Below are positions 18,901 through 61,277 of a DNA stretch of 64,000 nt, one piece after another. The DNA comes from Azolla caroliniana (Eukaryota > Plantae > Polypodiophyta). The notes beneath the pieces were generated by a model that had not been told where the DNA came from, made no database searches, and saw only the letters and a list, made by a program, of their open reading frames with translations. The stretch is from NCBI GenBank assembly GCA_043228905.1, contig JBHGNT010000058.1, positions 98,067-162,066 on the forward strand, in the 5' to 3' direction. Position 1 is the stretch's first letter. The number at the start of each line of letters is the position of its first letter. The position numbers and the translations under genes were made by a program.

Positions 18901-20835
18901 ATGTGATCCAATGTAGTGTAGCTGGTTAGGATACTCGGCTCTCACCCAAGAGACTCGGGTTTAATTCCCAGAAATGGAAATGACAATATCATATATTAAA
19001 CTTCCGACGCATATCATGTGTTAATTGTTTGATAACTTAGAAACTCAAGACCTAAACTAGGTGTTACAATAATGTACAATTAACAAAATAACGTTTGAAG
19101 GATTGATGATGAACTTTACTTTGATTTTTTTCTCCTAACATCAATTTGTAAACTTAATCCCATTATTCGATTAATTCTAGAGATTTCAAATGAAATTGGA
19201 CCAAACATTACGTTGTTCGGGACAACAAGAAGCAGTATATTTAGTTGTGGTTATTACTCAACATTGTTACGATAAATTAGTACACCAATAATTATAGGTT
19301 GGATAACTTGATACAATTTCGAACAATACATATACATTGCAAAATAATGGTCAACTGTCGAATAATGGTGAATTCTCGATGAGGATTGCACCATGTTTCT
19401 TTATTTGAAGTAAAGCACTAGAATATTATATTAGCTAATTCATTTACTAAATGAATTCCATTGTAGTCTAGTTGGTTCAGATCCATGATGTTTACACGAG
19501 ACTCCCGGGTACAGCAATTGGCATGGGAAAAACTAGATACAACATAGATCATGAGTTAATATTGCATCGATGGAAACCGTTGAAATTATTAAATATTAAA
19601 AACGAGAGTGTCTTAGAGTAATCCTGTGTTTCTCATTGATACTTACGGATTATATAAATATTATTTATTACTAATCAATGATTGCAATCTTGAAAAGTAC
19701 ACAAGGTATGATCCATTGTAGTCTAGTTGGTTAGGATACTAGGCTCTCACATGAGATAGCCGGGTTCAACTCCCAACAATGGAAACGACAATATCATATA
19801 TTAAATTTCCGACGCATATGATGTTTTAATTGTTTGATAACTCAAAAACTCAAGATTATGTTTGAAGGATTGATGACGATCTTTCCTCCATCAACATTCC
19901 AAAAATACGCATAGATTGTCGAATAATGGTGAATTCTCGATTAGAATTGCACCATGTTTCTTTATTTGAACGAAAGCACTTGAATATTACAATAACCAAT
20001 TCTTTTACTAAATGAATTCCATTGTAGTCTAGTTCGTTCAGATCCTTGTTTTTTACACAAGACTCCCGGGTACAACAATAGGCATTGGAAAAACTAGATA
20101 CATCATAGATGATGAGGTATTGTCGCATCGATAAAAACTGTTGAAATTATTAAATCTTAAAAACGAGAGTTTGTTAGAATAATCCTCAGTTTCTCGTTGA
20201 TGCTTGCGCAATATATAAATATTATTTATTACTAATCTATGATTGCAATATTAAAAACTACACAAGATATGATCCATTGTAGTCTAGTTGATTAGGATAC
20301 TCGGCTCTCACCCGAGAGACCTGGGCCGGGTTCAACTCCCGGCAATGGAAACGACAATATCATATATTGAATTTCCGATGGATATCATGTGTTAACTATT
20401 TGATAACTCAAAAAATAAAGACCTAAACTAGACAATTAACAAAATAATCAATATTATGTTTGAAGGATTGATGGCGAACTTTACTTTAATTTTTTTCTCC
20501 TAACATCAATTTCTAAACTTAATCCCATTATTCGATTAATGGTAGAGCTTTCAAATGAAATTGGACAAAACATTATGTTGTTCGAGACAACAAGAAGAAG
20601 TATATTTGGTTGTGGTTATTCGTCAACATTGGTACGACAAATTAGTACACCAACAATTACAGTTGGGATAACTCGATACAATTTCACACAATACGCATAG
20701 AATACAAAATAATGTTCAACTGTCGACAAGCATTGCACCATGTTTCTTTATTTGTAGCAAAGCACTAGAATAGTACATTAACTAATTCATTTACTCAATG
20801 TATTCCATTGTAATCAAGTTGCTTCGAATCGCTGA

Positions 20836-23325
20836 TTTTTTTTTTTCCAAAAAAAAAAACTACTACCATTAGTTATGCAATGTACAAAGGATAATTTACA
20901 ACTCATATCTTATAAGACATCTTGCATGTCGAAGGAAAAGAATATGTGTAGATGAAACAACAAAGAAAAAAAACTCCAAAGCACCACATCATTCGATGTG
21001 TATAGCATAACTCGAACACATATTCTCCACGTGAGCCTGATACAAGCAGAAGTTAGAATAGATGTCCTCCATTCGCTCCTCAAGGCAGCACCCATCTAGA
21101 TGTTAGGTACACTTGGAGGGAACAACCATCGTGGTGGTTGATAATTCCACTTCACTTTACCATCCATTAGATGTAGCATCGACGAACTCCATTTCAGCAA
21201 GAAACGAGCTCTCGCTTCTTCACTTGCGTCAGATGGCCCTTGAAGACTTTCAAACTCACCTCGCAACATAGAAATAAGATTGAACCAGATCATCATTAGA
21301 TTCTCTGCCGGCGGGGTTCGTTTACCTGTGAAGGTCTCCTTGCACCTAGATACCCACACTTGCCAGACCGTAAGGCCGACCACTAATACCTATATGTCCA
21401 CGCAACGTTCCTGTAAGAAGAATAAACCTCCTTGCGTTAGTTGCACAGATCCTTGTATCACCTTTAAAGAAGGATTGTTTCCATTCCACCCTTGAAACCA
21501 CGAGGCCGATTCAATGGCCAACCAAGTGATTGCTGCGCTCGATACATGAACCTCAACCCCGAACCGAGCCAAGTTTCTTAACCTCCTCAACCAATTTTCT
21601 TGCGCTCGAGGGCAACACTACAAACAATGAGCGATGTCCTCCAAGCTTGCACTACATGCCTTCCAACCACTCATGCCACCTCTATTCCCAAGCCACTCTC
21701 CCGTTGGAACAACCCGATGGGTGATTAACCAAAAAAACACTTTGATCCGCTCGGGAAGGGATGAGTTCCATATCCTGCTCCTAGTTCTATCCACGAAGGC
21801 TAACTTGATAGCTGCATAGGACCACTTGTTGGCACACTTCTCACGATACGAACCTAACTTTCTCCCCAACCGCGTCGAGTATTCGAAGAAACCTAATGAT
21901 TTATCTTGTTCTCCCTTCCACGTATATTCAACGGGATCCCATTCTACGAGCTCGAGAGGCTTGGCTTCAACCACGTACAAGATCCAATCCTCCTCAACCT
22001 CTTCGACTGGTGGATTCACCTTCCATTTCTTTCCGACTCTTGCCACAATTCTAATCGGGTACCAGCCTGCACTTTCATCTAATAATCCAATCTGGACGGT
22101 CTTCCCATTCTTTCCTAGACCCCTGACATTGATAATTTTTCCGGTATCATCACATTGTCCGGACCATTCACCCTCTTCCTCATTACCAATAGGAAGCGAG
22201 GAGAGAGCTGTATTGACTACGTCAAGCATCTTTCTGCCATTTCGGACCTTTCCCAAGTCTTCATATAGTTGATCACGATTATTGTCGGACAGCCGCATCC
22301 AATAAGCCACCAACTGTATCCCTAGACAATACAATGTAGCCCACGGTATGTGCTTGCTTTGTCCAAGCATCGTTCCTTCTGGCGATTGTACGATCTCGTT
22401 CCACAGTAGGGGTTGGCGCATCCATTTAACACTCGTACTTGGACGATTCTGACTTAGATGCCCACGGAGCATACTCCACGCCTGCATCCCTGACATACAA
22501 GTACGATCAGCCAACCGGTTAGATTTCCTCAACTTTAAGGCCATACAAAAAGGCCACACTTTGTGTGACTTCCAATGCCCACCCAGTCTTGGACTCCCGA
22601 CAATGCTCCTATTATGTATCAATGTTTTCCATAACTCGTTACCAGGTAGCAAGCTCCTTACCAATACCTTACATAACAATGCTTGACTCTGCAATCAAGG
22701 GTCAACCAATCCTAAACCCCCCTTACTCTTGGGAAGAACCAACGTAGACCATGATACTTTGGCTGCCGCGTTGTCTTTCCTCATCCCAGCCCAAAGGAAT
22801 CCCCTAATACACGCTTTAACATTACGAATAGCTTTCTTGTCAAACATCCACACTGAAACTGCATGCCATAATGTAGACAAGAACACATGGTTAGCTACTA
22901 TGATCCTGCCAGCCAATGATAAGTTCATCCCTGACCAGTTGCAAATTTTGTCACAGATTTTGCTTTGAATTTGTTGCAACTGAATTCCTTTGTCGATATC
23001 TACCCCAATCCACGTTCCCAGATACCGAGTGGCTTCCCCGTTTGCAATCCATTTGAATTCAACATTTGGCTTCCAAACAGGCTCGGACTCCAAGATGATC
23101 GAAAAACCCTTGGACTTCTTCCAATTGATGGACGCTACCAATACCTTGCAAAAGAGCTCAATAACACTCTGTGCGCTCTCAAGATTCGCTTCATTTTCTT
23201 GGAGGTATAGCATCGTATCGTCCGGGAACTCCGACTCCAGCAGGGACTTCCTTGAATTAGGGATCGAAAAACCATGAAGATTTGCCCCTTGACTGTTAAA
23301 AAGGCAGACATTGCTTCAGTAATAA
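20836..23325 (-). mobile_element. 5'-truncated L1-clade LINE
   Basis: Poly(A) tail appears as T11 at 20836-20846, merged with the satellite T5 tract. ORF2 remnant on the minus strand; truncated within RT; no TSD seen. Confidence 0.93.
21096..23325 (-). pseudogene. LINE ORF2 remnant (RT C-terminal half, thumb, zf-RVT-like region)
   Basis: Motifs EFPDDTMLYL (YADD-type), RYLGTWIG, LSLAGRIIVAN, VSWSTLVLPKSKGGLG and RIWNSSLPERIKVFFWLITH. Four ORF-track pieces lie in one frame separated by three in-frame stops. Confidence 0.92.
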
Positions 23326-26300: not shown

Positions 26301-27752
26301 GTTATGGTTATTCCTCAACATTGTTACGATAAATTAGTAGACCAACAATTATAGTTTGGATAACTTGATACAATTTCAAGCAATACGCATAGATTGCAAA
26401 ATAATGGTCAACGCTTGACAAGTTTTGCACCAGGTTTCTTTATTTGTAGCAAAGCACTAAAATAGTACATTAACTAATTTATTTACTAAATGAATTCCAT
26501 TGTAATCCAGTTGTCTCAAATTGTAGATTTTTACTCGAAACGTGCGGGGACAAGTACAGGCATAGGAAAAACTAGATAGATTATATATCATGAGTTAATG
26601 TGGCATCGATAAAAACGCGTGAAATTATTAAATCTTAAAAACGAGAGTTTGTTAGAATAATCCTCTGTTTCTTGTTGATGCTTGTGCAATATATAAATAT
26701 TATTTATTACTGATCAATGATTGCAATATTAAAAACTGTACAAGATGTAATCCATTAAAGTCTAGTTGGTCAGAATACTTGGCTCTCACGCGAGGTACCC
26801 GTGTTGAACTCTTGGCAATAGAAAGGATAACTCAAAAACTTAAGACGTAAAGTAGTTACAATAATGTACAATTACCAAAATAATCATTATTATGTTGGAA
26901 GGATTGATAAAGAACTTTGGTTTGAGTTTTTTCTCCGCACATCAATTTCTAAACTTAATACGAATATTCTATTAATAGTAGAGGTTTCTAATGAGCTTTG
27001 ACAAAAGATTATGTGGTTTGGGACAAGGAGAAGAAGTATATTTAGTCGTGGTTATTCCTTAACATTGTTACGACAAAGTAGTACACCAAGAATTATAGTT
27101 TGGATAATTTGATACAATTTCCAAAAATACGCATAGATTGTCGAATAATGGTGAATTCTCGATGACCATTGCACCATGTTTCTTGATTTGAAGTAAAGTA
27201 CTAAAATATTAGATTACCTAATTCATTTACTAAAAGAATTCCAGTGTAGTCTAGTTGGTTCGTATCCTTGTTTTTTACACGAGACTCCCGGGTACAACAA
27301 TTGGCATTGGAAAAACTAGCTACATCATAGATCATGAGTTAATATCACATCAATAAAAACCATTCAAATTATTAAATCCTAAAAACGAGAGTTTGTTAGA
27401 ATAGTGCTCAGTTTCTCGGTGACGCTTGCGCAACATATAAATATTATTTATTACGAATGAATGATTGCAATATTAAAAAGTACACAAGATATGATACATT
27501 ATAGTCTAGTTGGTTATGATACTCGGCTCTCACCCGAGAGACCCGGTTTCAACTCCCGGCAATGGAAACGAAAATAATACATTTTAAATTTCCGACGCAT
27601 ATGTTTTGTTAACTGTTTGATAATTGAAAAACTCAAGACCTAAAGTAGATGTTATAATAATGTACAATTAACGAAATAATCAATATTATGTGTGAAGGAT
27701 TGAGGACGAACTTTGCTTTGATATTTTTCTCCTAACATCAATTTTTCAACTT
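23326..27752 (+). repeat. tRNA-Glu-derived satellite, block 2
   Basis: Resumes in register after the LINE (ACTCGAAACGTGCGGGTACAAG); same motifs as block 1. Confidence 0.95.
24834..24906 (+). tRNA. tRNA-Glu(CTC)-like copy, probably a pseudogene
   Basis: Full-length 73 nt; lesions in the anticodon stem/loop (CTCCGGTCTCAC) and G53>A. Confidence 0.7.
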
Positions 27753-30632
27753 TGCGTATGTTTTAGTAGTACATGACAGTAGAATGAAATTGCACAGGTA
27801 ACATCAAACTGAAGAATAGAATATAACGTTAATCTAAATTGATAAAGTTTTATATTATATACCTGTGTCAGAAAACTAATCTAAAACCCATTGAAAATTT
27901 GAAACCATAAAATTTGAAAAAATAAAAAATCTTGGATTTTTAATTGGAATCCAATGCGATGCACTAGATTTCAGTTGAAAATCCAAGTTTTTTTTTTTTT
28001 GTAATTTTTAAAATTTTTTCCATTAAAAAATAAAAAATGGATTTTCAACTAAAATACTATGCACTACATTATATTTTAGTATATATAGCTAGAATCTAAT
28101 GCAATGCGTTGGATTAGAGTCGAAAATCCATTTTTCTTTTTTCTTTTTCCAATGTTATTTATTTATTTATTTTCCATATAAAATAATAATAAACGGCTTT
28201 TCAACTGAAATCCGATACACTACATCAGATCTTAGTCTATACAGCTAGACATTGATGCATTGCATCAGATTTTAGCTGGCAATCCTCTTTCTTTTCAATT
28301 GTTTTTTATTTTTTCAAAAAATAAATAAAAATATATTAGAAAAGTGGATTTGCAACTGAAATCTAATGCACTACATCGAATTTCAATTAAAAATCCAAAT
28401 TTCTTTTAGGTTTTTCATAAAACAATGAGATAATAAAAAAATATTACATTTTCAACAAAATCTGAACCATTGAGTCGGATTTCAATTGCAAATTAATGTT
28501 TTATGAAAAAACATAAGAAAAATATTGGACTTGCAATGGAAATCTGATGCACTGCATCGGATTTCTGTTGAAACTCAATGATTTTGAACGGAAATCCGAT
28601 GCAGTGCATCGGATTTCCATTGAAAATCCTGTTGAAAATGATGTGTTTTCAACGGGAATCCGATGCAGTGCATCGGATTCCCGTTGAAAACACATCATTT
28701 TAAATGGAGAAAATCACAATCTGTTTATTTTTAACACTTTTTTAGAGAAAAATATAAACAAATAAGAAAATTTGTAAACAAACAAGAAAACGTGGACTTT
28801 CAATGGAAATCCGATGCAGTGCATCGGATTCCCGTTGAAAATCCATCTTTTTCAATTCCTATATATTTATTTATGATAAAAACAAAAACAATTCAAAACA
28901 AATACAAAAAGAAAGTCAAAATATCTGAAAAATTGGAAACAAATAAGACAAAATGGATTTTCAATAGAAATCCGATGTAGTGCATCGGATTTCTCTAGAA
29001 AACCCATCTTTTGCAATTTTTATTTATTTACTTATGGGAAAAAATGAAAAAAAATTTAAAAAATACAAAACAATATTTTAAAATATGAAAATTTGGTAAC
29101 AAATAGCAAAAAATTGACTTTCAATACAAATCCGATGCAATAAATCGGATTTCCTTTGAAAATTCATTTTTTCAATTTTTATATAGTTATTTATGAGAAA
29201 ATAGACAAACAAAATACCAAAAAAATTCTAAAAACTATGAAAATTTGGAAATTTTCCATTGAAAATCAATTTTTTCAATATTTATTTATTTTTTATAGAA
29301 AAAATTCAAAAAAATTCAAAAAAAAAGCAAATTTGGGAAAAAATATGTAAAAGTGGACTTTCAACCAAAATCCGATGTAGTGCATCGGATTTCCGTTGAA
29401 AATCCATTTTTTCAATTTTTATTTATTTTTTTATGGGAAAAATAAAAACAAATTCAAAAAAAATTCAAAAAATAAGAAAATTTTCAAAAAAATAACAAAA
29501 ATTGGATTTTCAATTGAATCCGATGCACGGAATTGGATTTCCATTGAAATCTAAAATTTCAATTTTTATTTATTTATTTATGAGTAAAATAAAAAATGTT
29601 TATTTATTTATTTATGGGAAAATGTTTTATTTTTTCAATTTGTATTTATTTATGTATTTTCAGGAAATCCATGCAATGTATTATATTTTAGTCTATGTAG
29701 CTAGAATTCAATGCAATGCATTAAAATGCAAGAGTATTTTTTTAATGGAAATTTTTAAAAAAATTCCAAGACTTACAGGAATCTGATGCATTATATCCAA
29801 TTCTAGATGTATAGAGTAAAATTCGACATGTTGCGTCAAATCTAGATGGAATGAATCGGATTTCTGTACGACATCAAAGGCTTACTATGAGAATCTAAGA
29901 AAAATGGAAAACATCTTTAAGACATTTTTTAGATTCTAATGATTTTGGTAGAAAGCTTCTCTCACATAATCTAATCTTGTAAATGGAAAGTACATAATGA
30001 AATATCATAACGAAAAAGTGAGGAGGAAAGATGCATCAAGCACATCTACTCTTACATTGGATAATGTTTATATATTAGTTTATGACTTATCTTTGACCAA
30101 AACAAGTTATCTATGACAGACCACAATGAAGATACAAAAAGAGGATCTGGAATGTGGCTTCAGACACAACACAAAGACAAACAATAAGCATGACTCATAA
30201 ACTCGATGAGGTTGGATTGCAATTGGATCAACACAATGCATTAGTTTCCATTGATGATGAGGATGAGACCTCATAAACTCGTACTAGTTCATCTAATGGG
30301 TATGAAGATGATGACATAAACTTGAAAAATGATTGCCCTAATACGTTAACTATAAATATTGTATTGCACATCAAGATTTGGAATCAGAATTTCTATAAAT
30401 ATTGGGGTTAGTCATTTTGGACATTCATTTGTAAGTTTGGCATGTCCATTATTTAGGCATTGTTTTGAACACCTAAAATTCCGTACATGCTAAAAATCAA
30501 TATATTTTTGGGTCATTTTTAAAATTCCTTTACGCATGCGGCACACCTTTTTGTGAATCACCCTAATTTGTGTGATTTTTTTATGGACAGTTCTCAAAAT
30601 GCGACATATTACCTGTTTCAAATGTCCCGGTG
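27753..30632. mobile_element. AT-rich insert, probable non-autonomous or decayed DNA transposon fragment with one surviving end
   Basis: Non-satellite sequence with a sharp right junction (...AATGTCCCGGTG | TTTATTTG; reverse complement starts CACCGGG). No matching left TIR, no TSD and no transposase ORF. Confidence 0.5.
27934..29870. repeat. Array of ~45-50 bp palindromic units, consensus GGATTTTCAACGGAAATCCGATGCA(C/G)TGCATCGGATTTCCGTTGAAAATCC
   Basis: More than 15 variably decayed units in A/T-run spacers; perfect 67-bp palindrome at 28635-28701. Confidence 0.9.
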
Positions 30633-33600
30633 TTTATTTGTAGCAAAGCACTAAAATAGTACATTAACTAATTTATTTACTAAATGAATTCCATTGTAAT
30701 CCAGTTGTCTCGAATTGTAGATTTTTACTTGAAACGTGCGGGGACAAGTACAGGCATAGGAAAAACTAGATACATTATATATCATGAGTTAATGTGGCAT
30801 CGATAAAAGCCCGTGAAATTATTAAATCTTAAAAACGAGAGTTTGTTAGAATAATCCTCTGTTTCTTGTTGATGCTTGCGCAATATATAAATATTATTTA
30901 TTACTGATCAATGATTGCAATATTAAAAACTGTACAAGATGTAATCCATTGAAGTCTAGTTGGTCAGAATACTCGACTCTCACGCGAGATACCCGTGTTC
31001 AACTCTTTGCAATAGAAAGGACAATATCATATATAAAATTTTGCGACGAATGTCATGCGTTAACTGTTTGATAACTCAAAAACTTAAGACGTAAAGTAGT
31101 TACAATAATGTACAATTACCAAAATAATCATTATTATGTTGGAAGGATTGATAAAGAACTTTGCTTTGATTTTTTTCTCCGCACATCAATTTCTACACTT
31201 AATACGAATATTCAATTAATAGTAGAGGTTTCTAATGAGCTTTGACAAACGATTATGTGGTTTGGGACAAGGAGAAGAAGTATATTTAGTCGTGGTTATT
31301 CCTCAACATTGTTACGACAAAGTAGTACACCAAGAATTATAGTTTGGATAATTTGATACAATTTCCAAAAATGCGCATAGATTGTCGAATAATGGTGAAT
31401 TCTCGATGAGCATCGCACCATGTTTCTTGATTTGAAGTAAAGTACTAAAATATTATATTACCTAATTCATTTACTAAAAGAATTCCAGTGTAGTTTAGTT
31501 GGTTCGTATCTTTGTTTTTTACATGAGACTCCCGGGTACAACAATTGGCATTGGAAAAACTAGCTACATCATAGATCATGAGTTAATATCACATCAATAA
31601 AAACCATTGAAATTCTTAAATCCTAAAAACGAGAGTCTGTTAGAATAGTCCTCAGTTTCTCGGTGATGCTTGCGCAACATATAAATATTATTTATTACGA
31701 ATGGATGATTGCAATATTAAAAAGTACACAAGATATGATACATTATAGTCCAGTTGGTTAGGATACTCGGCTCTCACCCGAGAGACCCGGTTTCAACTCC
31801 CGGCAATGGAAACGAAAATATTGTATATTAAATTTCCGACGCATATGTTTTGTTAATTGTTTGATAACTCAAAAACTCAAGACCTAAAGTAGATGTTCCA
31901 ATAATGTACAATTAACAAGATAACCAATATTATGTGTGAAGGATTGATGACGAACTTTGCTTTGATATTTTTCTCCTAACATCAATTTCTAAACTTAATC
32001 CAATTATTCAATTAATAGTAGAGGTTTCAAATGAAATTTGACAAAAGATTATGTTGTTCGGGACCAGAAGAAGCAGTATATTTAGTCGTCGTTATTTCTC
32101 AACATGGTTACGACAAATTAGTACACCGACAATTATAGTTTGGATAACTCAATAGAATTTCAAACAATACGCATAGGTTGTAGAATAATGGTCAACTGTC
32201 GATGAGCATTGCACCAGGTTTCTTTATTTGTAATAGAGGACTAGAATATTATATTAACTAATTTATTTACTAAATGAATTCCATTGTAATCAAGTCGAGT
32301 ATAAATCGTTGATTTATACTCGAAATGTGCGGGTACAAGTACAAGCATAGGAAAAACTAGATACATTATATATCATGAGTTAATGTGGCATCGATAAAAA
32401 CCCCAGAAATTATTAAATCTTAAAAACGAGAGTATGTTAGAATAATCCTCTGTTTCTTGTTGATGCTTGCGCAATATATAAATATTATTTATTACTAATC
32501 AATGATTGCAATATTAAAAAGTGTACAAGATGTAATCCATTGAAGTCTAGTTGGTTAGAATACTCGGTTCCTTGCTGTTTACCTGAGACGCCCGGGTACA
32601 ACTAGATATATCAGATATACTGAGTTAATGTGGCATCGAGAAAAACCCTTGAAATTATTTAATCTTAAAAACGAGTGTGGTAGAATAGTCCTCTGTTTCT
32701 CGTTCATGCTTGCGTAAAATATAAATATTATTTATTTGTAATCAACGATTGCAATATTAAAAAGCACACAAAATGTGATCCATTGTAGTCTAGTTGGTTA
32801 GGATACTCGGCTCTCACCCGAGAGTTCCGGGTTCAACTACCGGCAATGGAAACGACAATGTCATATATTAAATTTCCGACACATATAATGCGTTATCTGT
32901 TTGATAACTCCAAAACTCAAGACCTAAAGTAAATGTTACAATAATGTGCAATTAACAAAATAATCAATATTATGTTTGAAGGATTGATGATGAACTTTAC
33001 TTTGATTGAAGGATCGATAGAAACCCATGAAATTATTAAATCTTAAAAACAAGATTGTGTTAGAATAATCCTGTGTTTCTTGTAGATGCTTGCACAATAT
33101 ATAATGTTTTTTTTTCTTCTTCTAACATCAATTTCTAAACTTAATCCCATTATTCGATTAATGGTAGAGGTTTCAACTGAAATTGGACAAAACATTATGT
33201 TGTTCAGGATAACAAGAAGTAGTATATTTGGTTCGTATCCTTGTTTTTTACACGAGACTCCCGGGTAAAACAATTGGCATTGGAAAAACTAGCTATATCA
33301 TAGATCATGAGTTAATATCACATCAATAAAAACCATTGAAATTCTTAAATCCTAAAAACGAGAGTCTGTTAGAATAGTCCTCAGTTTCTCGGAGACGCTT
33401 GCGCAACATATAAATATTATTTATTACGAATGAATGATTGCAATATTAAAAAGTACACAAGATATGATACATTACAGTCTAGTTGGTTAGGATACTCGGC
33501 TCTCACCCGAGAGACCTGGTTTCAACTCCCGGCAATGGAAACGAAAATATTATATATTAAATTTCCGACGCATATGTTTTGTTAACTGTTTGATAACTCA

Positions 33601-47342: not shown

Positions 47343-47345
47343 CTA

Positions 47346-47355
47346 TCTCCCCCTT
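47346..47355 (-). promoter_or_regulatory. Polypurine tract
   Basis: AAGGGGGAGA on the minus strand, 3 nt before the 3' LTR. Confidence 0.85.
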
Positions 47356-48140: not shown

Positions 48141-48930
48141 TACGTCATAGATCATGAGGTAATGTCACATCGATAAAAACCCTTGAAACTATTTAATCTT
48201 AAAAACGAGTGTGTGTTAGAATAATCCTCAGTTCCTCGTTGATGCGTGCGCAATATATAAATATTAGTTATTACTAATCTATGATTGCAATATTAAGAAG
48301 TACATAAGATAGGATTCATTGTAGTCTAGTTGGTTAGGATACTCGGCTTTCACCTCAGAGATCCGGGTTCAACTCCTGGCAATGGAAACAAGTATATCAT
48401 ATATTAAATTTTCGACTCATAGCATGTGTTAACGGTTTGATAACTCAAAAACTCAAGACCTAAAGTAGATGTTCCAATAATGTACAATTAACAAAATAAT
48501 CAATATTATGTTTGAAGGATTGATGACGAAGTTTGCTTTGATTTTTTTCTCCTAACATCAATTGCTAAAGTTAATCCCATTATTCAATTAATCATAGAGG
48601 TTTCAAATGAAATTTGACAAAACATTATGTTGTTCGGGACAAGAAGAAGAAATATATTTTGTCGTGGTCATTTCTCAACATGGTTACGACAAATTAGTAC
48701 ACTGACAATTATAGTTTGGATAACTGGATAGAATTTCCAAAAATACGCAAACCACTACAATATTATGTTTGAAGTATTGAAAATGTACTTTACTTTAATT
48801 TTTTTCTCCTAACATTAATTTCTAGACTTAATCCCATTATTCGATTAATGGTATAGGTTTCGAATGAAATTGCACCAAACATTATGTTTTTCGGGAAAAC
48901 AAGAAGCAGTACATCCAGTTGTGGTTATTC
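48141..48930 (+). repeat. Satellite segment inside the chromovirus; copy of ~45431-46285
   Basis: Shares diagnostic variants with 45431-46285 (TACGTCATAG, GATGCGTGCG, GGATTCATTG, CACCTCAGAGATCCGGG, ACATCCAGTTG). Confidence 0.92.
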
Positions 48931-48931
48931 C

Positions 48932-50248
48932 TTAAAGACGACGAGTGGAACGAGTCGGCGCTAATTGTGGACCGGGTTTGTCCGGATACTTTCGGTGGAA
49001 ATCGGCAAGAAGATCTTGTGCATTGGCAACATGCTGGACGGGTTCCCAAGTATGTTCGCTCAGAGTATAACCGAACCAATCGACCAAGTAATAAAGTTTG
49101 CTGCGAACAAGTTTGGAATCGAGGATGGCAACAACTTCATACTTCGGGCCGGCGTCCAACTCCAGCAGGGGCGGCGGTGGTGTCACACGATCCGGAATGG
49201 TGTTTGCTTTATAAGGTTCAAGAAGAGAACAATGGAAAACCGGATGTATCTGAAGCTACAAAGGGAGATCAAGGCGGAAGGAGACATCATTAATCTTACC
49301 CGTAATACGGAAGGGACCGAGTCGTCGATAATCCAACTTGTCGCATGGTCGAGTAGTCTTGATGTGATGACGTAAGAGCCATACTCGATCTCCGATGGCA
49401 AAAGAGGAGGGAATTCGATGACGATCCGCATAAGTCTTTTGTGTGTGTTGAGCATGACGAAGGTGAGTAGAGAGATCCATCTGGATCTTGGGTAGCCTCT
49501 CCAAATGATCCTCGGCACGAGGGGTGGTAGGTAGCTCCGGAGTGTCGATCACCGACCAGCGAGGATGGAAACTGGTATAAGAGAAAAATGGGGAGACCTG
49601 AGTCGAGGAGTGAATAGCATTATTATACGCAAACTCCGCAAAGTGGAGAATCTCGGCCCAATCGTCCCGTTGATAACTCAGCGTTTGGTTTGTTCGTTCC
49701 GCCTGCCCGTCGGTCTGAGGATGGTTGCCGGAGGAGAGGTTGCAGGAGACCTTGAGCATCTTGAAGAGATGCTGCCAAAATTTGGAGACGAATTGCGGGC
49801 CTCGGTCACTGATAATACTGTCTGAGAGGCCATGATGCCGAAATACCTCACGCATAACAAGAGCGGCGGTTTCCTCGCTAGTGATGGCTTTAGTACACGG
49901 CACAAAATGTGCCATCTTCGTGTATCGATCGACGACGGTTAGGATAGCATCGAACCCCTTCGAAACCGGCCGATCTGTGATAAAATCAAGACAAATAGAC
50001 TGCCACGGCCTACTTGGAATCGGTAAGGGTTCCAACAAGCCATATGGATGGTGTCGTGGCATCTTTGCTCGGCAGCAAGCATCACAGGTATGAACGTAGT
50101 CATCAACAAAACGCCGCATGTGGGGCCACCAAAAAGATCGCTGCCCTAGCTCCATCGTCTTAGTACTACCGAAATGTCCCGCGTATGGGTGTCGTGACAA
50201 TGTTGGACGATTTGAAGGCGACAGGAGCAATCGGGGACATATACGCAC
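48932..50248 (-). pseudogene. Integrase (zinc-binding HHCC region, DDE core, GPF motif) plus chromodomain
   Basis: GHFG..KT, CDACCR, ICLDFIT, IISDRGPQF, PQTDGQAER, YEVVAILDSK..YYLVDWFGY..TWEP; interrupted by a stop. Confidence 0.93.
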
Positions 50249-50626
50249 TTTTTAAAGAATAACAAACCATCATGATATTCGAATTGTCAGTAGTCAATAC
50301 CTGGTTGTTGAGACCGAGAACAGGATGCCCGAGAAGTATCAATGTGCGCCAAGATGTCTTGAGCAAAACTATCCGTCTTCAAGGTTGCACGTATGTCATC
50401 GGTAATCCGTGAATCCATCGGGGTGTGAAAAATCCGCGTCGTGTGCAATCATGTTGGTCCCAAGATTACTTGCTTTTGATTATCAAATGTTGCGTCACAA
50501 GGACGAGGTGCAAGATAGTGCATCTGCTTTTCCTTGATGCTTCCCCGGTCGATATGTGATTTTGAAGTCGAAACGCGTGAGGAATTGCGCCCATCGAGCT
50601 TGCCGTCGATTTAGTACGCGAGCGTT

Positions 50627-51718
50627 CTAAAAATAAGCAAGATTTTTATGATCGCTAAAGACAATGACCTGATGTGGAGAGCCCTCTAAGAGATGCCGCC
50701 ATTGTACAAATGAATCCACGATGGCTAATAACTCCTTGTCATGTATTTCGTAGTTGATTTCTACGACATCGAATTTGCGCGAATGGAAAGCCACCGGATG
50801 CAACTCTTCTTTATCGCCTTGTTGAGAAAGGATGCTACCGAGGGCGAAATCTGATGTGTCGGCCTCCATGATGAATGGTTTGCTTGTATCCACATGAGCT
50901 AGAATCGGTGCTGATGTAAAGGCCATATCTGCTTCTATGGACCAAAGAAATGCTTGGCCCTTCTTCGTAAGTTGTGTGAGAGGTAAAATAATCTTCGAGT
51001 AATCCTGTATAAACTTACGGTAGAAGTTAGCAAAACCTAGAAAACATTGTACATCTCGTATCGACTGTGGAATTTGCCACTCTAGTACAGTTTGGATTTT
51101 AGCTGGATCCATGGTGATGCCCTTTGAGGAGATGACGTAGCCTAGAAATTCCACTTGCTTGCAGCCAAAGCTACATTTTTCTAGCTTGGCATAAAGACCA
51201 TTCTCACGGAGTCGCTTTCGTACTAATAGTACATGAGAATCGTGCTCTTCCTGGGACTTCGAATAAATCAATAGATCATCCAGATAAATGATCAAACAGA
51301 TATCCAAGAGGTCTCTGAATATATCATTTGCCATGTGTTGGAAGACTGCGGGTGCATTGGTTAGGCCAAACGGCATAACAGTATACTCGAAATGCCCATA
51401 CCACGTGCGAAAGGCGGTCTTCCACTCATCTCCCGGTCGGATCTGCACGAGGTTATACGCTCCTCATAGGTCGATTTTAGTAAAAAACTTGGCACCATTA
51501 ACTCGCTCTAAAAGACTTGATATAAGAGGAAGTGCATACCTATTCCGGATGGTGACTTTATTCAATCCGTGGTAATCAACGACAAGACGAAGTGAGCCAT
51601 CTTTCTTCTTGACAAAGAAGATGGGTGCACCGACCGGAGATTTCGAATGGCGGATGAACCCTTTTGCCAAGTTCTCCTCTATGTAGGCTCGAAGGACTTC
51701 TAACTCGGTGGGTGACAA
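50627..51718 (-). pseudogene. Reverse transcriptase plus RNase H
   Basis: [66 protein letters not shown]; stop codon at ~51464. Confidence 0.95.
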
Positions 51719-51923
51719 GTTGTAAATTGGTCCCCATGGTGGCTCGGTTCCTGGTTGTAAATCGATGGGACAGTCATAGGGATGGTGATGAGGAAGGGTA
51801 CCGGCTTTTACCTTGTCAAATATATCGGCATAAGGATGCTATTTTGCCGGAAGTTGTACTGAGGAGTCCTTCTTGGGGTGAAATGGTCGAAACTTGGTGA
51901 GTTGATTCTTGGGGTGGTCGATA

Positions 51924-52379
51924 TCAGACTTCTCTTGTTCTCCAATCTATGGCTGGATTATGTAATTCAAACCAAGGTAATCCTAGGACAATGGGATGCT
52001 CTGGACTACTAATTATATTAAATGATATTACACACACAAAACTACCTAGGACAACCTGAATGGGTTCTGATTCTTCTACAATATTCCCGGAAGCAATGGG
52101 ATGACCATCAATGACTACTACAGATGGAGGACAAGGAAGATTTCTTAAGGATATCTGAGAAGCTTGGGCAAAATTTCGATCCATGAAAAAGGAATTAGCT
52201 CTGGAATCTAAAAGTGCTAGGACGGGTACTGGGGGAGTACTTGTAGTACTAACAATGACTTGGGCTAGGAACACATTGCTAACTTGCTTGGAAGGAATGG
52301 AACCACTAATGGGCTGTACAGATCTAGGGTTGCTGTCCAACCAAACGGCTCCTATTTTGGCTGGACTCAATCGTTTAAC
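51924..52379 (-). pseudogene. Aspartic protease region (start of pol)
   Basis: ALLDSRANSFF (DSG motif mutated to DSR) and IVLGLPWFELHNPAIDW. Confidence 0.88.
52335..52379 (-). promoter_or_regulatory. Putative -1 ribosomal frameshift signal (gag to pol)
   Basis: G TTA AAC heptamer just before the gag stop; the -1 frame is the protease frame; 6-nt spacer then an 11-bp stem GTCCAGCCAAA/TTTGGTTGGAC. Confidence 0.75.
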
Positions 52380-53525
52380 TCTTCATCTAATTGACTAAGG
52401 ATTTCAAATTTATTTGAGATACTTGGGCTATTAGTACTATGAATACTATCAAACACTCTATTAGTACTATTAATACTATCAGACACTCCTGAGGGAAGAA
52501 TTGACTCAGGTTTAGTACAGGCTACAATTTGATTTACCTGTCTTCTTGGCTTATGGGGACAATTGATTGCGATATGCCCTGGTCCACCGTAATAAAGACA
52601 TAATCGATTTGCACATCGTCGTTGCTTTTCTTCTTTCGATAACGGGCCGCGTCGACGCATGGTATCGATCTCCATTGGTGTCGAAGTATTTGCTTGAGGT
52701 ATGTCTCGTGCAAACGGTCTAGCCGCGACTGCGGCATAAGTGGGCTCCAGCCTAGCGCGTGGTATCTGTAATTGACGTTCCGAACGCCGTTCGAAAAGGC
52801 GGTTGTCACATCGGACCACTCGACTGATTGCCTCCGTAATAGACTTTGGTTCTTCGGGGAAGGTTAGAAGTAGATCTTTGACATCATTTCGCAGACCATA
52901 GCGAAACTGCTCCATTAGTGCTTGATCATCCGCCGCGTAGGCGGAAAGCGAGTAGGCGGAAATCCGCCGCGTAGGCCGAGGCTGGACGATCGCCTTGACG
53001 CAATCGCCGGATCTTGTTGATCGTCGTCCTGATGTTGTCGGTGTCTCCAAAGCAGGCTTTGAACTCACTAATAAAATCTTCAAAGTTATTAAGCAAGGGC
53101 GATTGTTTTTCTAGAAGCGGAGTGAACCATGCTAAGGCTGAGCCACTAAGCAACGTGCCTATTAAGCCGACTCGGGATGCATCAGTGGGGTATCGGGAAA
53201 GATGCATTTGGAGGACTAATCGTACCTGATTAAGGAATCCCCTGAATTGCGATCGCGTTCCATCAAATTTCACAAGAACTCCAATCTTCGGCTCTTTATG
53301 AAATCCTTGGGGACTTGATCCTTGTTGTTGCAATGCCGCTTCGAGTTGTTGCACCCGTAACACTAACTCCCCATGTTGTTGCTGCGTTTGTTGCTTTTCT
53401 AGAGCGATTTGTTGCAGATCCCCTATCAGCAGTTGGTTTTCTTGTTCTAGGGCAACAAACTTTTCTTTTCGGCACTGTAACTCGGAGAAAACGGATTGAT
53501 ATTCTTGGGCGCTAACAGTAGCCAT
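52367..53525 (-). pseudogene. Gag (frameshifted)
   Basis: KFDGTRSQFRGFLNQ, LLSGSALAWF, LRQG, TPMEID and a decayed zinc knuckle CLYYGGPGHIAINC; ATG at 53525; split over two frames near 52930-52960. Confidence 0.9.
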
Positions 53526-53585
53526 AGTAGAGGGAAAAGGGTATGAGGATGAGGGAGAACGACAAGTAGGCTGGAGGAAAGAAAA

Positions 53586-53597
53586 AAATTGGTTCAA
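53586..53597 (-). promoter_or_regulatory. Putative self-priming primer-binding site
   Basis: TTGAACCAATTT, 2 nt after the 5' LTR, with no TGG. It is complementary to AAATTGGTTCAA at 53807-53796 on the same strand within the LTR. Confidence 0.75.
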
Positions 53598-53599
53598 AC

Positions 53600-54023
53600 T
53601 ATCAAGAATAGTACTAAAGCAGAGATGGAATTAGTACTAAGAAGAACAGTACTATTAGTACTAAGAGGACGGGACTGCGTAAGATTCCCGAGAAAGAGGA
53701 AGTGAGAAGAGGAGAGACAGAGATAGGATGATGACATCAGCTCTTATATTATATGAAAGATAAGTACAAATCGGCTAAGAGGCTTAAGACTGGTGTTGAA
53801 CCAATTTGGTTCAAAACAATGCCTTGTGCCTCCTTTTATAGTGTTTTTAGGAATAATCTTGAAGCTTCTAGAATGTTCCAGAGAGATCTGGAATATACAT
53901 CAATTTTCTATGATAAAGAATAAATAAAAATAATACCCTACAAATTACAATTCATAGTCTAATGGTAAGAGCTCGACCCATGTAGCATAAGGTCATGGGT
54001 TCGAGTATTGCCATATCATGACA
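53600..54023 (-). repeat. 5' LTR of the chromovirus (424 bp)
   Basis: Direct repeat of 46935-47342; TATAAAA at 53840-53834 on the minus strand; inner terminus mutated. Confidence 0.95.
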
Positions 54024-54267
54024 CTAGTTGGTTCAGATACTTGTTTTTTACACGAGACTCCCGGGTACAACAATTGGCATGGGAAAAACTAAATACATCA
54101 TAGATCATGAGTTAATATCTCATCGATAAAAACCCTTGAAATTATTAAATCTTAAAAACGAGAGTGTGTTGGAATAATCCTCAGTTTCTTGTTAATACTT
54201 GCACAATCTATAAATATTATTTATTACTAATCAATGATTGCAATATTAAAAAGTACACTACATATGA

Positions 54268-54340
54268 TCCATTGTAGTCTAGTTGGTTAGGATACTTGGC
54301 TTTCACCCGAGAGACTCGGGTTTAACTCCCGGCAATGGAA
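54268..54340 (+). pseudogene. tRNA-Glu-like copy, TTC anticodon variant
   Basis: All four stems can still pair (with G-U), but the T loop reads TTTAACT (C56>T), which damages the B box. Confidence 0.8.
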
Positions 54341-56971
54341 ACGACAATATCATATATAAAATTTCCGACGTATATCATGTGTTAATTGTTTGATAACTTC
54401 CGGGTACAACAATAGGCATTGGAAAAACTAGAGACATCATAGATCATGAGGTAATGTCGCATCGATAAAAACTTTTCAAATTATTAAATCTTAAAAATGA
54501 TAGTGTGTTAGAATAATCCTCAGTTTCTCGTTGATGCTTGCCTAATATATCAATATCACTTATTAATCTATGATTGCAATATATCTATACATAAGATAGG
54601 ATCCATTGTAGTCTAGTTGGTTAAGATACTCGGCTTTCACCAGAGAGACCCGTGTTCAACTCCCGGCAACGGAAACGACAATATCATATTATAAATTTCC
54701 AACGCATATCATGTGTTAACTGTTTGATAACTCAAAAACTCAAGACCTAAAATGTAAAATTAACAAAATAATCAATATTATGTTTGAAGGATTGATGACA
54801 AATTTAGTTTGGTTTTTATACATTTCGATAACTTGATAGAATTTCCAAACATACGCATAGATTGTAGAATAATGCTGAACTCTCGATCAACATTGCACCA
54901 TAGTTCTTTATTTGAAGAAAAGGACTAGAATATTACATTAACTAATTCATTTACTAAATTAATTCTATTGTAGTCTAGTTGGTTATCCTTGTTTTTTACA
55001 CGAGATTGCCGGGTACAACATTATGTTGTTCAGGAAAACAAGAAGCGGTAGATTTGGTTGTGGTTATTCTTGAACATCGATAGTTTCGATCACTTGATAC
55101 AATTTCAAACAATACGCATACATTGGAGAATAATGGTTAATTGTCGATGACTATTGCACTATGTTTCTTTATTTGTAAGAAAGGACTAGAATGGTACATT
55201 AACTAATTCATTAACAAAGGACTAGAATGGTACATTGTAATCAAGTTGCCTCGGATGCTTACTTTTTACCTGGGACGCCCGACTACAAGTAGATATATCA
55301 TATATCATGAGTTAATGTGGCATCGATAAAAATCCTTGAAATTATTAAATCCTAAAAACAATAGTGTGTTAGAATAATCCTCAGTTTTTCATTGATGCTT
55401 GCGCAATATATAAATATTATTTATTTCTAATCTATTATAGCAATATTGAAAAGCATAGAAGATGTGATCCATTGTAGTCTAGTTGGTTAGGATGATCGCA
55501 TCTCACCCGAGAGACCCGTGTTCAACTCCCGGTAATGGAAAAGACAATACCATATATCAAATTTTGCGACGCATGTCATGTGTGTACATGTCAAAAACTC
55601 AAGCCCTAAAGTAGTTCATACAATAATGTACAATTAACAAAATAATTAATATTATGTTTGAAGGATTGACAAAGAACTTTACTTTAATTTCTAAACTTAA
55701 TCCCATTATTCGATTAATGGTAGAGGTTTCGAATGAAATTGGACCAAACATTATGTTGTTCGGGAGAACAAGAAACAGTATATCTAGTTGTGGTTATTCA
55801 TGAACATTGTTACGATAAATTAGTACACCAACAATTATAGTTTGTATAACTTGATACAATTTTAAGCAATACGCATAGATTGCAAAATAATGGTCAACTG
55901 TCGACAAGCATTGCAGCATGTTTCTTTTTTTGTAGCAAAGCACTAGAATAGTACATTAACTAATTAATTTACTAAATTAATTCCATTGTAGTCTAGTTGG
56001 TTCGGATCCTTGTTTTTTACACGAGACTCCCGGGTACAACAATAGGCATTGGGAAAACTAGATACATCATAGATCATGAGGTAATGTGATATCGACAAAA
56101 ACCCTTGAAATTATTAAATCTTAAAAACGAGAGTGGGTTATAATAATCATCGGTTTCTCGTTGATGGTTGTGCAATAAATAAATATTATTTATTACCAAT
56201 CAATGATTTATCACTAATCAATAATTGCAATATTAAAAAGTGTACCAGATGTTATCCATGGAAGTCTAGTTGGTTAGAATACTCGGCTCTCACACGAGAG
56301 ACACGGGTTTAACTACCGGCAATGAAAACGACAATATCATATATTAAATTTCCGAGGCATATATTGTGTTAACTGTTTGATAACTCAAATAATCAAGACC
56401 TCAAGTAGATGTTACAATAATGTACAATTAACTAAATAATCAATATTATGTTTGAAGGATTGATGACGAACATTGCTTTCCTTTTTTTCTCCTAACATCA
56501 ATTTCTAAACTTAATCCCATTATTCAATCTAATAGTAGAGGTTTCAAATGAAATTTGACAAAATATTATTATGTTCGGGATAAGAAGAACCAATATATTT
56601 AGTCGTGGTTATTTCTCAACATTATTACGACAAACTAGTACACCAAGAATTATAATTTGGATAACTTGATAGAATTTCTTAAAATATGCATAGATTGTCG
56701 AATAATGGTGAATTCTCGCTGACATGGCACCATGTTTCTTTATTTGAAGTAAAGCACTAGAATATTACATTAACTAATGTATTTACTAAATGAATTCCAT
56801 TGTAGTCTAGTTGGTTTAGATCATTGTGTTTTACACAAGACTCCCAAGTACAGCAATTGGCATGAGAAAAACTAGATACATCATAGATCATGAGTTAATA
56901 TCGCATCGATTAAAACCCTTGGAATTATTAAATCTTAAAAAAAGAGTGTGTTCGAATAATCCTCAGTTTCT

Positions 56972-59900
56972 CGTTGATGCTTGCGCAATATATAAATTAT
57001 ATTTATTACTAATCAATGATTGGAATATTAAAAAGTACAGAAGATATGATCCATTGTAGTCTAGTTGGTTAGGATACTCGGATTTCACCTGAGAGACCTG
57101 TGTTCAAGTCCCGGCAATGGAAACGACAATATCATATATTAAATTTCTGACGCATATGATGTTTTAATTGTTTGATAACTCAAAAACTCAAGATTATGTT
57201 TGAAGGATTGATGATAAACTTTCCTCGATCAAGATTCCAAAAATACGCATTGATTGTCAAATAATGGTGAATTCTCGATTATCATTGCACCATGTTTGTT
57301 TATTTGAAAGAAAGCACTTGAATATTACATTAACCAATTCATTTACTAAATGAATTCCATTGTAGTCTAGTTCGTTCAGATCCTTGTTTTTTACACAAGA
57401 CTCCCGGGTACAACAATAGGCATTGGAAAAACTAGATACATTATAGATGATGAGGTAATGTCGCATCGATAAAAACCATTGAAATTATTAAATATTAAAA
57501 ACGAGAATGTGGTTACGACAAATTAGTACACTGACAATTATAGTTTGGATAACTTGATAGAATTGCCAAAAATATGCATAGATTGTAGAATAATGGTGAA
57601 CTCTCGATCCACATTGCACCATATTTCTTTATTTGAAGCAAAGCACTAGAATATTACATTAACTAATTCATTTACTAAATAAATTCCATTGTTGCCTAGT
57701 TGGTTCGGATCCTCATTTTTTTACGCATAGATTGCAGAATTATGGTCAACTATCGAGAGACCCAGGTTCAACTCCCACCAATAGAAAAGACAATATCATA
57801 TATCATATTTTGTGACGCATGTCGTGTGTTAAGTGTTCGATAACTGAAAAATTGAAGACATAAAGTAGTTGTTACAATAATGTACAATTAACAAAATAAT
57901 CAATATTATGTTTGAAGGATTGATAAAGAACTATAGTTTGATTTTTTTCTCCTAACATTAATTTCTAAACTTAATCCCATTATTCAATTAAAAGGAGAGG
58001 TGTCAAATGAAATTTGACATAACATTATGTATTTCGGGACAAGAAAAAGCAATATATTTAGGCGTGGTTATTCCTCAACATCGTTACGACAATTATAGTT
58101 TGGGTAGCTTGATACAATTTCCAAAAATACGCATAGATTGTAGATTTATAGTGAACTCTCAATGATCATTGCACCATGTTTCTTTATTTGAAGCAAGGCA
58201 CTAGAATATTACATTAACTAATTCATTTACTCAATGAATTCCATTGTAGTCTAGTTGGATCAGATCCTTGTATTTTACACGAGACTCCCGGGTACATCAA
58301 TAGGCATTGGGAAAACTATATACATCATAGATCATGATATATTGTGGCATTGATAAAAACCCTTAAAATTATTAAAGCTTAACAACGAGAGTGTGTTAGA
58401 ATAATCCTTTGTTTCTCATTGATGCTTGTGAAATATATAAATATTATCTATTATTACTCAATGACTGCAATATTAAAAAGTGCAAAAGATGTGATCCATC
58501 ATAGTCTAGTTGTTTAGGATACTCGGCTCTCACCCGAGAGACCTGGGTTCAACTTCCGGCAATGGAAACGACAATATCATATATTAAATTTCCCACGCAT
58601 ATCATGTGCTAACTATTGGATAATTTAGAAACTCAAGATCAAGATCTAAAGTAGTTGTGACAATAATGTACAATTAACAAAATAAACAATATTATGTCTG
58701 AAGGATTGATGAGTAACTTTACCTTGATTTTTTTCTCGTAACATCAATTTCTAAAGTTAATCCAATTATTCAATTAATGGTAGAGGTTTCAAATGAAATT
58801 GGACAAAACATTATGTTTTTGAGGATAACAAGAAGCAGTAGATTTAGGTGGGGTTACTACACCAACAATTATAGCTTGGATAACTCGATACAATATAAAA
58901 CAATACGCAGAATAATGGTCAACTGTCGACAAGCATTCCACATGTTTCTTTATTTGTAGCAAAGCACTAGAATAGTACATTAACTAATTCATTTGATAAA
59001 TGAATTCCATTGTAATCAAGTTGCCTCGGATGCTTGCTTTTTACCCGAGACGCACGACTATAAGTAGATATATCATATATTATGAGTTAATGTGGCATCG
59101 ATAAAAACCCTTGAAATTATTAAATCTTAAAACCGAGAGTGTGTTAGAATAATCCTCAGTTTTTCGTTGATGGTTGCGAAAAATATTTATATTATTTTTT
59201 TCTAATCAATGATTGCAATAATAGAAAGCAGAGAAGATGTAATCCATTGTAGTCTAGTTGGTTAGAATACTCCGCTCCTACCCAAGAGAACCGGGTTAAA
59301 CTCCCATCAATGGATACATCATAGCTCATGAGTTAATTTGGCATCGATAGAAATCCGTGAAATTATTAAATCTTAAAAACGAGACTGTGTTAGAATAATC
59401 CTGTGTTTCTCGTAGATGCTTGCACAATATATAAATATTATTTATTTTTTTCTTCTAACATGAATTTCTAAACTTAGTCCCATTATTCAATTAATGGTAC
59501 ACCTTTCAAATGAAATTTGAGAAAACATTATGTTGTTCGATATAACAAGAAGAAGTATATTTAGTTCTGGTTATTCCACAACTTTTTTACAACAAATTAT
59601 TTCTTTATTTCTAACAAAGGACTAAAAGTAAATATATCCTATATCATGAGTTAATATGGCATCGATAAAAACCCTTGAAATTATTAAATCTTAAAAACGA
59701 CAGTGTGTTAGAATAATCATTATTTTTTCGTTGATACCTGCGAAATATATAAATATTATTAATTTCTAATCAATGATAAAAAGATTAAAAAGCACACAAG
59801 ATCTGATCTACGATAGTCTAGTTGGTTAGGATACTCGGCCCTCACCTGAGAGACCCAGGTTCAACTCCCGGCAATGGAAACGATAATATCATATATTAAA

Positions 59901-60396
59901 TTTCTGATGCATATCAGGTGTTAACTCTTTGATAACTCAAAAACTGAAGTCCTAAAGTAGGTGTTACAATAATGTACAATTAACAAAATAATCAATTTTA
60001 TGTTTCAACGATTGATGACGAACTTTACTTTGATTTTCTTCTCCTAACATCAATTTCTAAACTTCATTCCATTATTCGATTAATGGTAGAGGTTTCAAAA
60101 GAAATTGGACAAAATATTATGTTGTTCGGGACAACAAGAAGAAGAAAATATTATGTGGTTACTCCTCAACATTATTACGATAAATTAGTACACCAACAAT
60201 TATAGTTTAGATAACTTGATTCAATTTCAAACAATATGCATAGATTGCAGAATAATTTTCAACTGTCGACAAGCATGATACCATTTTTCTTTATTTGTAG
60301 CATAGCACTAGAATAGTACATTCACTAACTCATTTACTAAATGAATTCCACTGTAATCAAGTTGCCTCGAATCGTTGATTTTTACCCGAGACGCGT
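56972..60396 (+). repeat. Higher-order duplicate of positions 1-3406
   Basis: Same order of monomer variants and deletion junctions; identical spurious ORFs at offset 56971 (1806 vs 58777). Confidence 0.95.
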
Positions 60397-61239
60397 TGTC
60401 GTAGTGTAGGTTGCACACTATGTGGAAATTATATTTTTGTCCCTCCGGATAGAGAATGGAGTGCTCGGTGAGAACCGGAAGAAAACGGCATACCGGCAAG
60501 GAGGAAAACGGCATACCGGCAAGGAGGAAAAACGGCATACCGGCAAGGAAGAAAACGGCATACCGGCAAGGAAGAGCCGGATAAAGAGACATAAATGTAA
60601 AAAAAAAGGAAATACTCACTACTGCGCAGGGCGTGAGTCGAACTCTGCACCTCCACGTTGACAAACCCCAACCTTACCATTACATTAAATTATCTTAAGT
60701 GTTTTAAATATAGATTTAATATGTATAAGACCTTTATTTATGCATACCTTTATTAAAAGGTAAATCGTGTATTTCTTTAATATATGAAAAAGAAAAAACA
60801 CGAGACACTAAAAATAACTCATGCACATCTAGCGTGCATGAGCCCTATACTTAGGAAATAAAAAAAAAGCATCACATGCACATTTAGTGGACATGAACAC
60901 TTTTTGTAAAAAAAAAAAAAAAAAAGCATGAAGCCATGCTTAGCTCTTCTTTCCTTATATAAGGAGGAGAGAAATATGTAAAGGGTTGATGATTATTTGG
61001 ATTAAGTATTAATCAATACAAAAATTATTCGTGGGATTCACGATTTATACATCTACTTCTCTCTTAACACCCTAAGTACCAATTAATATAGTATACTCGT
61101 GTGATTCACGAGTTTCTTATCTTTCTCTTTGCTATTTACTCATAATTAATCTCTATCTCACGAACTTCTTTCTCCTAGTCCAAGACCTCTGTGGTTCCCA
61201 CCCGACTCACGCAACGATCCGCAGCCGAAAGGCACGACA
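60397..61239 (+). repeat. 5' LTR (843 bp)
   Basis: TGTCGT...ACGACA inverted termini; TATATAA near 60955; PBS follows after 4 nt. Confidence 0.88.
60481..60573 (+). repeat. 23-bp tandem repeat x4 in U3 (GAAAACGGCATACCGGCAAGGAR)
   Basis: Directly visible. Confidence 0.92.
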
Positions 61240-61243
61240 CAGT

Positions 61244-61261: not shown

Positions 61262-61277
61262 GACGGGTGGCAAGGAG

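Follow-up and report, generated by a model that had tools for sequence, protein, structure and literature searches.

Four retroelement insertions in a 39-bp patch of a tRNA-Glu-derived satellite of Azolla caroliniana: a suggestive cluster in a decayed tRNA copy

Four Insertions in the Decayed tRNA Copy

Why should retroelements of different kinds settle in one short stretch of a long satellite repeat? This question is raised by a window from the fern Azolla caroliniana (the whole stretch of DNA that was analysed, 64,000 nucleotides at positions 98,067 to 162,066 of contig JBHGNT010000058.1), where a tRNA-Glu-derived satellite array carries four separate retroelement insertions, namely a 5'-truncated long interspersed nuclear element (LINE), a solo long terminal repeat (LTR), a chromovirus and a gypsy element, within 39 bp of its consensus monomer (positions 553–591, referred to as the patch in the following), all inside a decayed copy of the tRNA. 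The cluster is suggestive but unproven, and four events are too few to establish a special landing pad.

1–60396, plus strand: tRNA-Glu-derived satellite array with a 796-bp consensus, many rearranged units, interrupted by non-satellite blocks

The monomer consensus (796 bp) was derived from an alignment of 11 canonical units, and the window was placed on a consensus dimer by BLAST, base by base, resulting in 46,284 bases assigned to satellite. Consensus positions 1–73 represent a near-intact tRNA, and positions 542–614 the decayed copy, which shares 50 of 73 positions with the former; its B box is broken (GGTACAAGTAC versus GGTTCGANTCC in the tRNA), and the A-box position is occupied by TAATCAAGTTGC. 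With ARAGORN, 33 tRNA-Glu-like calls were obtained for the window, every one on the plus strand; the near-intact tRNAs score weakly (29–58 bits), and about half of the tRNA copies still score as tRNA. Five non-satellite blocks are found in the window (20841–23325, 27753–30632, 36718–38010, 46935–54023 and 60397 to the window end), and no further inserts of at least 50 bp are present in it. Four of these blocks, the split target of the LINE and the empty paralogs of two targets are as follows.

20804–20840, plus strand: nucleotides (nt) 1–37 of a decayed copy, split off by the LINE; the remainder resumes at 23326
20841–23325, minus strand: 5'-truncated non-LTR (LINE) retroelement, poly(A) end toward the target T run
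36718–38010, plus strand: solo LTR, Phygy-like, termini TGTCGT...CGCGACA, with the 4-bp target-site duplication (TSD) ACGC at 36714–36717 and 38011–38014
46935–54023, minus strand: chromovirus (gag, reverse transcriptase (RT)-RNase H, integrase, chromodomain) with the 5-bp TSD CTAGT at 46930–46934 and 54024–54028
5930–6010, plus strand: empty paralog of the chromovirus target, …TATAGTCTAGTTGGTTCAG…
60397–64000, plus strand: non-chromovirus Ty3/gypsy element, Phygy-like, leaving the window; it follows GCGT at 60393–60396
3340–3450, plus strand: empty paralog of the gypsy target, …GAGACGCGT/GGGTACAAG…, reading …GACGCGT/GGGTAC… (slash, insertion point)

All junctions were read directly from the sequence, and empty-site paralogs are available for two of the four sites. 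Within the decayed copy, the insertion points are at nt 12–16 (chromovirus), between nt 37 and 38 (LINE), at nt 45–48 (solo LTR) and at nt 47–50 (gypsy element, following nt 50). On the consensus, these sites lie 206–244 bp upstream of the next tRNA and 480–518 bp downstream of the previous one. A preliminary description of the window had already reported four retroelement insertions in about 40 bp of the decayed copy, roughly 205–245 bp upstream of the near-intact tRNA; re-reading of the junctions and the two empty paralogs bear this out, with the nucleotides being exact. It had also regarded the insertions as independent, which is correct insofar as the four are true insertions that hit different monomers at different times, whereas solo LTR and gypsy element belong to one lineage, leaving three unrelated integration machineries and not four. 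The orientations of the elements are mixed (two plus, two minus), and the ages of the insertions differ: the two LTRs of the chromovirus are 93% alike, and the gypsy element arrived after a duplication with copies that are 97.8% alike.

Target Choice of the Inserted Elements

As the likeliest cause of the cluster we regard element-specific target choice in combination with small-sample luck, and not a dedicated landing pad, a reading that we hold with about even confidence. The patch places a conserved T5/A run beside the densest CpG cluster of the monomer, and in this scenario most of the elements would find their own preferred site there.

For the LINE, the junction reads GATTTTT/ACTCGA (between consensus positions 578 and 579), with its poly(A) joined to the native T run. 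Of the T11 run at 20836–20846, five T are native, and the extra T's run into the LINE. The LINE endonuclease nicked TTTTT/A in the patch and primed on the poly(A), a step that the junction displays directly. The poly(A) placed on a T run nicked before A and the 5' truncation are both shared with L1-type LINEs and their target-primed reverse transcription at TTTT/A. Unlike these, the element at 20841–23325 shows no visible TSD, consensus positions 578 and 579 being contiguous across the insert, and it is classed here as a LINE without clade. Its zf-RVT domain scores 28.1 bits at a Pfam cut-off of 27.5, and its look-alikes in the Atlas are all Streptophyta zf-RVT clusters; a PDB sequence search with the LINE open reading frame (ORF) gave no match.

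The integrase of the tRNA-Trp-primed, non-chromovirus lineage produces 4-bp, CpG-centred duplications. Its two members in the window, solo LTR and gypsy element, occupy neighbouring CpGs of one cluster (ACGC and GCGT). Their common descent is indicated by the first approximately 28 bases of the two LTRs, which align, and by TGTCG..CGACA at both ends in either case. Both LTRs also hold short tandem repeats around ACCGGCAAG (37068–37305 and 60470–60575), and to judge by the sequence these ACCGGCAAG repeats may be a further sign of LTR kinship, although BLAST finds no overall similarity. The gypsy element comprises an 843-bp LTR (60397–61239), a primer-binding site for tRNA-Trp (TGGTGAACCCGACGTGA, 61244–61260) and a gag-protease ORF extending to 63317. 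Its empty target belongs to a long duplication, with window positions 1–3406 matching 56972–60396 at 97.8% and the match stopping exactly at the gypsy junction. The part of the element beyond the window can be judged from contig L001, 98% identical to the window gypsy, whose pol encodes RT-RNase H-integrase with no Chromo match; the pol ORF ends at 5856, inside the 3' LTR starting at 5844.

All sites that can be read for this lineage, up to six flanking tetramers at four insertions, are centred on CpG: ACGC on both sides of the solo LTR, GCGT at the gypsy element, ACGG at the 3' flank of L001, and ACGG and ACGC at a further relative, L023. In the latter (561–7745), the LTRs are only 87% alike and the flanks are unequal (ACGG, ACGC); this copy may be old, or its contig a chimera of the metagenome assembly. 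Among plant LTR lineages, a preference for NCGN is known from Phygy alone, whose elements are short, with an internal region taken up by coding sequence (Neumann et al., 2019, PMC6317226), and Phygy TSDs are reported to be mostly 4 bp (Jedlicka et al., 2019, PMC6911290). The elements studied here agree with Phygy in being non-chromovirus gypsy elements with coding sequence nearly filling the internal region (seen in L001), a 4-bp TSD and NCGN sites. However, Phygy has been described as Physcomitrella-specific, and the present elements are Phygy-like by sites, TSD and layout.

The chromovirus is bounded by LTRs at about 46935–47342 and 53600–54023, which are about 410–425 bp long. A chromodomain (PF00385, E=4e-13) is encoded at 47357–47608 on the minus strand, downstream of the integrase and SH3 domains. 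Its empty target is represented by window positions 5150–5975 and 5969–6665, which match the two flanks of the chromovirus and overlap at the TSD. The element has been altered secondarily:

48139–49716, no strand: secondary rearrangement in the chromovirus, a satellite piece followed by a second integrase C-terminal region

Within the rearranged part, the 797-bp satellite piece is a copy of 45429–46287 (98–99%), and the second copy of the integrase C-terminal/chromodomain region (47352–48138) is 97.6% identical. From this sequence arrangement, 47352–49716 looks like a tandem duplication over the element end plus flank, followed by a deletion. Because of this rearrangement, the LTR appears as 1.19 kb but is truly about 0.41 kb; the 1.19-kb repeat next to the chromovirus consists of the real LTR (about 410–425 bp) plus the integrase C-terminal region.

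Of the four hits, that of the chromovirus alone (CTAGT, nt 12–16) is without a sequence explanation. According to Gao et al. (2008, as cited in PMC11735389), the chromodomain directs chromovirus integration to heterochromatin, and in the present element it would likewise steer integration to heterochromatin in general. The likeness to chromodomain-directed integration consists in an integrase followed by a chromodomain in an element that resides inside a satellite array. However, such a mechanism accounts for regional and not for nucleotide-level targeting, and related copies are found outside the satellite. In Arabidopsis, ATHILA and Tal1 invade centromeric satellites, being targeted by CENH3 chromatin at the scale of the array (PMC11735389). 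The build-up of LTR elements within tandem repeats is common to that system and the window. We know of no monomer-position hotspot common to unrelated families from the work on ATHILA and Tal1 in centromeres.

Besides, an A-box-like motif (TAGTCTAATGG) and a B-box-like motif (GGTTCGAGT) are found in the outer chromovirus LTR end (53945–54023 and 46935–47010), and both motifs are kept in the relatives L030 (232–300) and L031 (103–160). An RNA polymerase III (Pol III)-like tRNA in this LTR end was considered and rejected, as no Rfam tRNA is obtained even at E<=1.

How Surprising Is the Cluster?

Besides the four insertions, one other non-satellite block has to be considered when counting events.

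27753–30632, no strand: AT-rich block (25% GC) with approximately 150-bp internal tandem and inverted repeats, matching no element class

The preliminary description had treated this block as an insert with one surviving end close to the decayed copy. Its junctions are at consensus positions 258 and 485, outside the patch, and a 1.3-kb stretch of the array is directly duplicated on its two sides (26439–27752 corresponding to 30633–31996, 96%). ORFs of at least 100 aa are lacking in the block (the longest has 94 aa), and no terminal repeats or TSD were seen. The block is no simple insertion, and the earlier interpretation has been abandoned. The repeats within it surround the palindrome …AATCCGATGCAGTGCATCGGATT….

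The patch forms a GC island amid AT-rich DNA, second in the monomer to that of the tRNA, and 6 of the 23 consensus CpGs sit in it within 29 bp. It holds 5.1% of the array bases, compared with 15.4% of the CpGs, 15.0% of the RCGY, 15.2% of the TTTT/A and 17.5% of the T5/A sites. With family site preference, an individual element would fall into the patch in about 15% instead of 5% of cases, and three of the four hits are unsurprising singly, given the local preference. For the joint pattern, the tightest circular span of four events was simulated and the probability of a span of at most 35 bp recorded. It amounts to 4.2e-4 under a uniform null, in good agreement with the rough estimate of 5e-4 made before. 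With the chromovirus placed uniformly, the LINE at TTTT/A and both Phygy-like elements at CpG, the value is 6.9e-4, and under the strictest null (GC-rich positions only, T5/A and RCGY, respectively) it is 1.1e-3. Requiring four of five events, that is, including the AT-rich block, results in 1.8e-3 to 2.9e-3. All these cluster probabilities are post hoc, the pattern having been picked by eye among the many satellite windows of this genome. The possibility that family preference would fully explain the clustering, raised along with the initial observation, is hence realized in part: the chance of the patch increases threefold from 5% to about 15%, whereas the joint probability is still about 1e-3.

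Several observations weigh against target choice and luck as the complete explanation. The family-aware nulls (7e-4 to 1.1e-3) are only about two-fold above the uniform one, and site preference alone does not account for the joint cluster. Comparable sites outside the patch are unused, among them RCGY at consensus positions 432, 731 and 102 (more frequent than the RCGY sites of the patch) and the CpG-rich near-intact tRNA. Furthermore, the ends of rearrangements not caused by transposable elements (non-TE) are about 1.8-fold enriched in the decayed copy (20/120 versus 9.3% expected, p=0.007; 16/60 when counted by events, p=0.055), an enrichment that hints at something regional. Together with a filler sequence at nt 37/38 of rearranged copies, described below, it fits both a fragile or accessible patch and poorer alignment in the most divergent segment.

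A Possible Regional Hotspot and Other Explanations

Possible, though less probable than target choice and luck, is that the patch represents a regional hotspot for unrelated elements, brought about by chromatin (a positioned nucleosome or a linker in a phased array) or by the structure of the DNA, the tRNA-like stems being prone to form hairpins. In that case the patch would be more accessible, or better bent, for the LINE endonuclease as well as for the LTR integrases. A cluster probability of about 1e-3 even with family site preference allowed for, the enrichment of rearrangement breakpoints and of 26–47-bp deletions inside the decayed copy, and the position of the patch as a GC island between AT-rich flanks are in line with this proposal, as is a reported tendency of plant LTR elements to favour palindromes and nucleosome-occupied DNA (PMC6911290). 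On the other hand, it rests on four events found post hoc, and the fifth block lies outside the patch. Moreover, the near-intact tRNA, CpG-rich and a stronger GC island with better palindromes, has been spared and carries no insertion in the window. The extended version of the hotspot, a multi-family integration and breakage site of about 40 bp per 796-bp unit throughout the genome, is likewise tentative.

Insertions might also land anywhere in the monomer, with those outside the decayed copy being lost by selection or unequal exchange. The high turnover of the array, in which 60 distinct non-TE breakpoints are found in 46 kb, would be compatible with such losses. However, with about half of the tRNA copies scoring, and these at 29–58 bits, there is no evident function on which selection could act, unequal exchange removes inserts whatever their monomer position, and the AT-rich block at consensus positions 258 and 485 has survived; we consider this explanation improbable.

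A further explanation concerns the tRNA ancestry of the target. To see the families in other surroundings, 13 contigs with relatives of both LTR lineages were fetched, five of which have readable flanks (L001 and L023; L027, L028 and L030). All five relatives reside in non-satellite DNA, with no satellite in their flanks, which argues against dedicated targeting. Association of the same families with ordinary tRNA genes, the check suggested at the outset, did not emerge either, as ARAGORN detects no tRNA gene on six contigs including these five, where flanks are only 0.2–5.7 kb long.

Retroelements tied to tRNA-type sequence are well established, and the window shares this feature with the Pol III-directed systems Ty3, Ty1, TRE5/TRE3 and DGLT-A. 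Yeast Ty3 inserts immediately before the 5' end of the tRNA, a few bp from the Pol III start, and yeast Ty1 integrates with nucleosome periodicity over several hundred bp on the upstream side of Pol III genes. In Dictyostelium, TRE5 integrates about 48 bp upstream, TRE3 about 100 bp downstream and DGLT-A 13–33 bp upstream of tRNA genes. Unlike in the case of Ty3, the elements in the window have entered the tRNA-like body itself, the B box of the target is broken, and copies of the families are found elsewhere without nearby tRNA genes. The distances observed here (206–244 bp upstream and 480–518 bp downstream, for several families) differ from those of TRE5, TRE3 and DGLT-A; the upstream distance is compatible with Ty1, albeit for four events only, too few to reveal a periodicity. 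Guidance of integration by Pol III machinery (TFIIIC/TFIIIB) bound to the tRNA-like sequence, and with it the decayed tRNA as the landing pad envisaged in the preliminary description, is thus very improbable despite the tRNA-derived target at a Ty1-like distance from the near-intact tRNA, considering that the B box is broken, the hits are at three different places of the tRNA-like body with no fixed offset and in mixed orientations, three different integration machineries would need to read the same factor, the relatives of both LTR lineages are neither flanked by tRNA genes nor located in satellite, sequence accounts for the LINE and Phygy-like sites, and even the near-intact tRNAs are weak.

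Structure and Occurrence of the Array

Apart from the insertions, the array is heavily rearranged. Segmental duplications overlie the 796-bp period, with offsets of about 57 kb and 41–48 kb and 94–98% identity, the duplicated pairs being 1–3406 versus 56972–60396 (offset 56,971) and 5150–7350 versus 46111–55467. Because of these large duplications, transposable element insertions in the array can be copied and have to be de-duplicated before counting. A chimeric tRNA variant occurs four times (714–830, 13236–13350, 36258–36375 and 57685–57800) and is composed of nt 1–37 of the decayed copy, a 35-bp filler from consensus positions 430–464 and the 3' half of the near-intact tRNA. The filler at nt 37/38 is at the canonical tRNA-intron position, which is also the LINE insertion point. 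Strong CpG depletion as a sign of methylation is not seen, with an observed/expected ratio of 0.93 for CpG in the array; among the variants of the copies, C>T and G>A are somewhat in excess.

When ten satellite ORFs were searched in a protein collection, none was present, and an 83-aa ORF matched itself alone. A metagenome scan with a conserved 21-mer returned 21 loci, among which only L006 is this satellite, without a junction. Mapping contigs of four runs to 16672–20840 (six monomers, 80% likeness, Logan contigs of 200–400 bp) gave no distribution of transposable element junctions; the loose ends among the matches listed in this mapping are dispersed tRNA-Glu genes or divergent satellite variants. 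The satellite reaches very high k-mer depth in a 'leaf metagenome' and in two coded organisms (A and B); C and D, two further coded organisms from that study, essentially lack it. For the fern Azolla filiculoides, about 7,500 tRNA genes have been reported (PMC13437025).

Implications

In satellite arrays of this kind, neighbouring 'replicates' of an insertion call for caution, as they may be copies resulting from large segmental duplications. Were the patch a true hotspot, it would represent a natural case of one short sequence drawing retroelements that differ in integration chemistry, and chromatin phasing in a non-seed plant might then be read from long-monomer satellites. For now, the array chiefly illustrates how an integrase that targets CpG and an endonuclease that nicks T runs can meet on one GC island of an AT-rich repeat.

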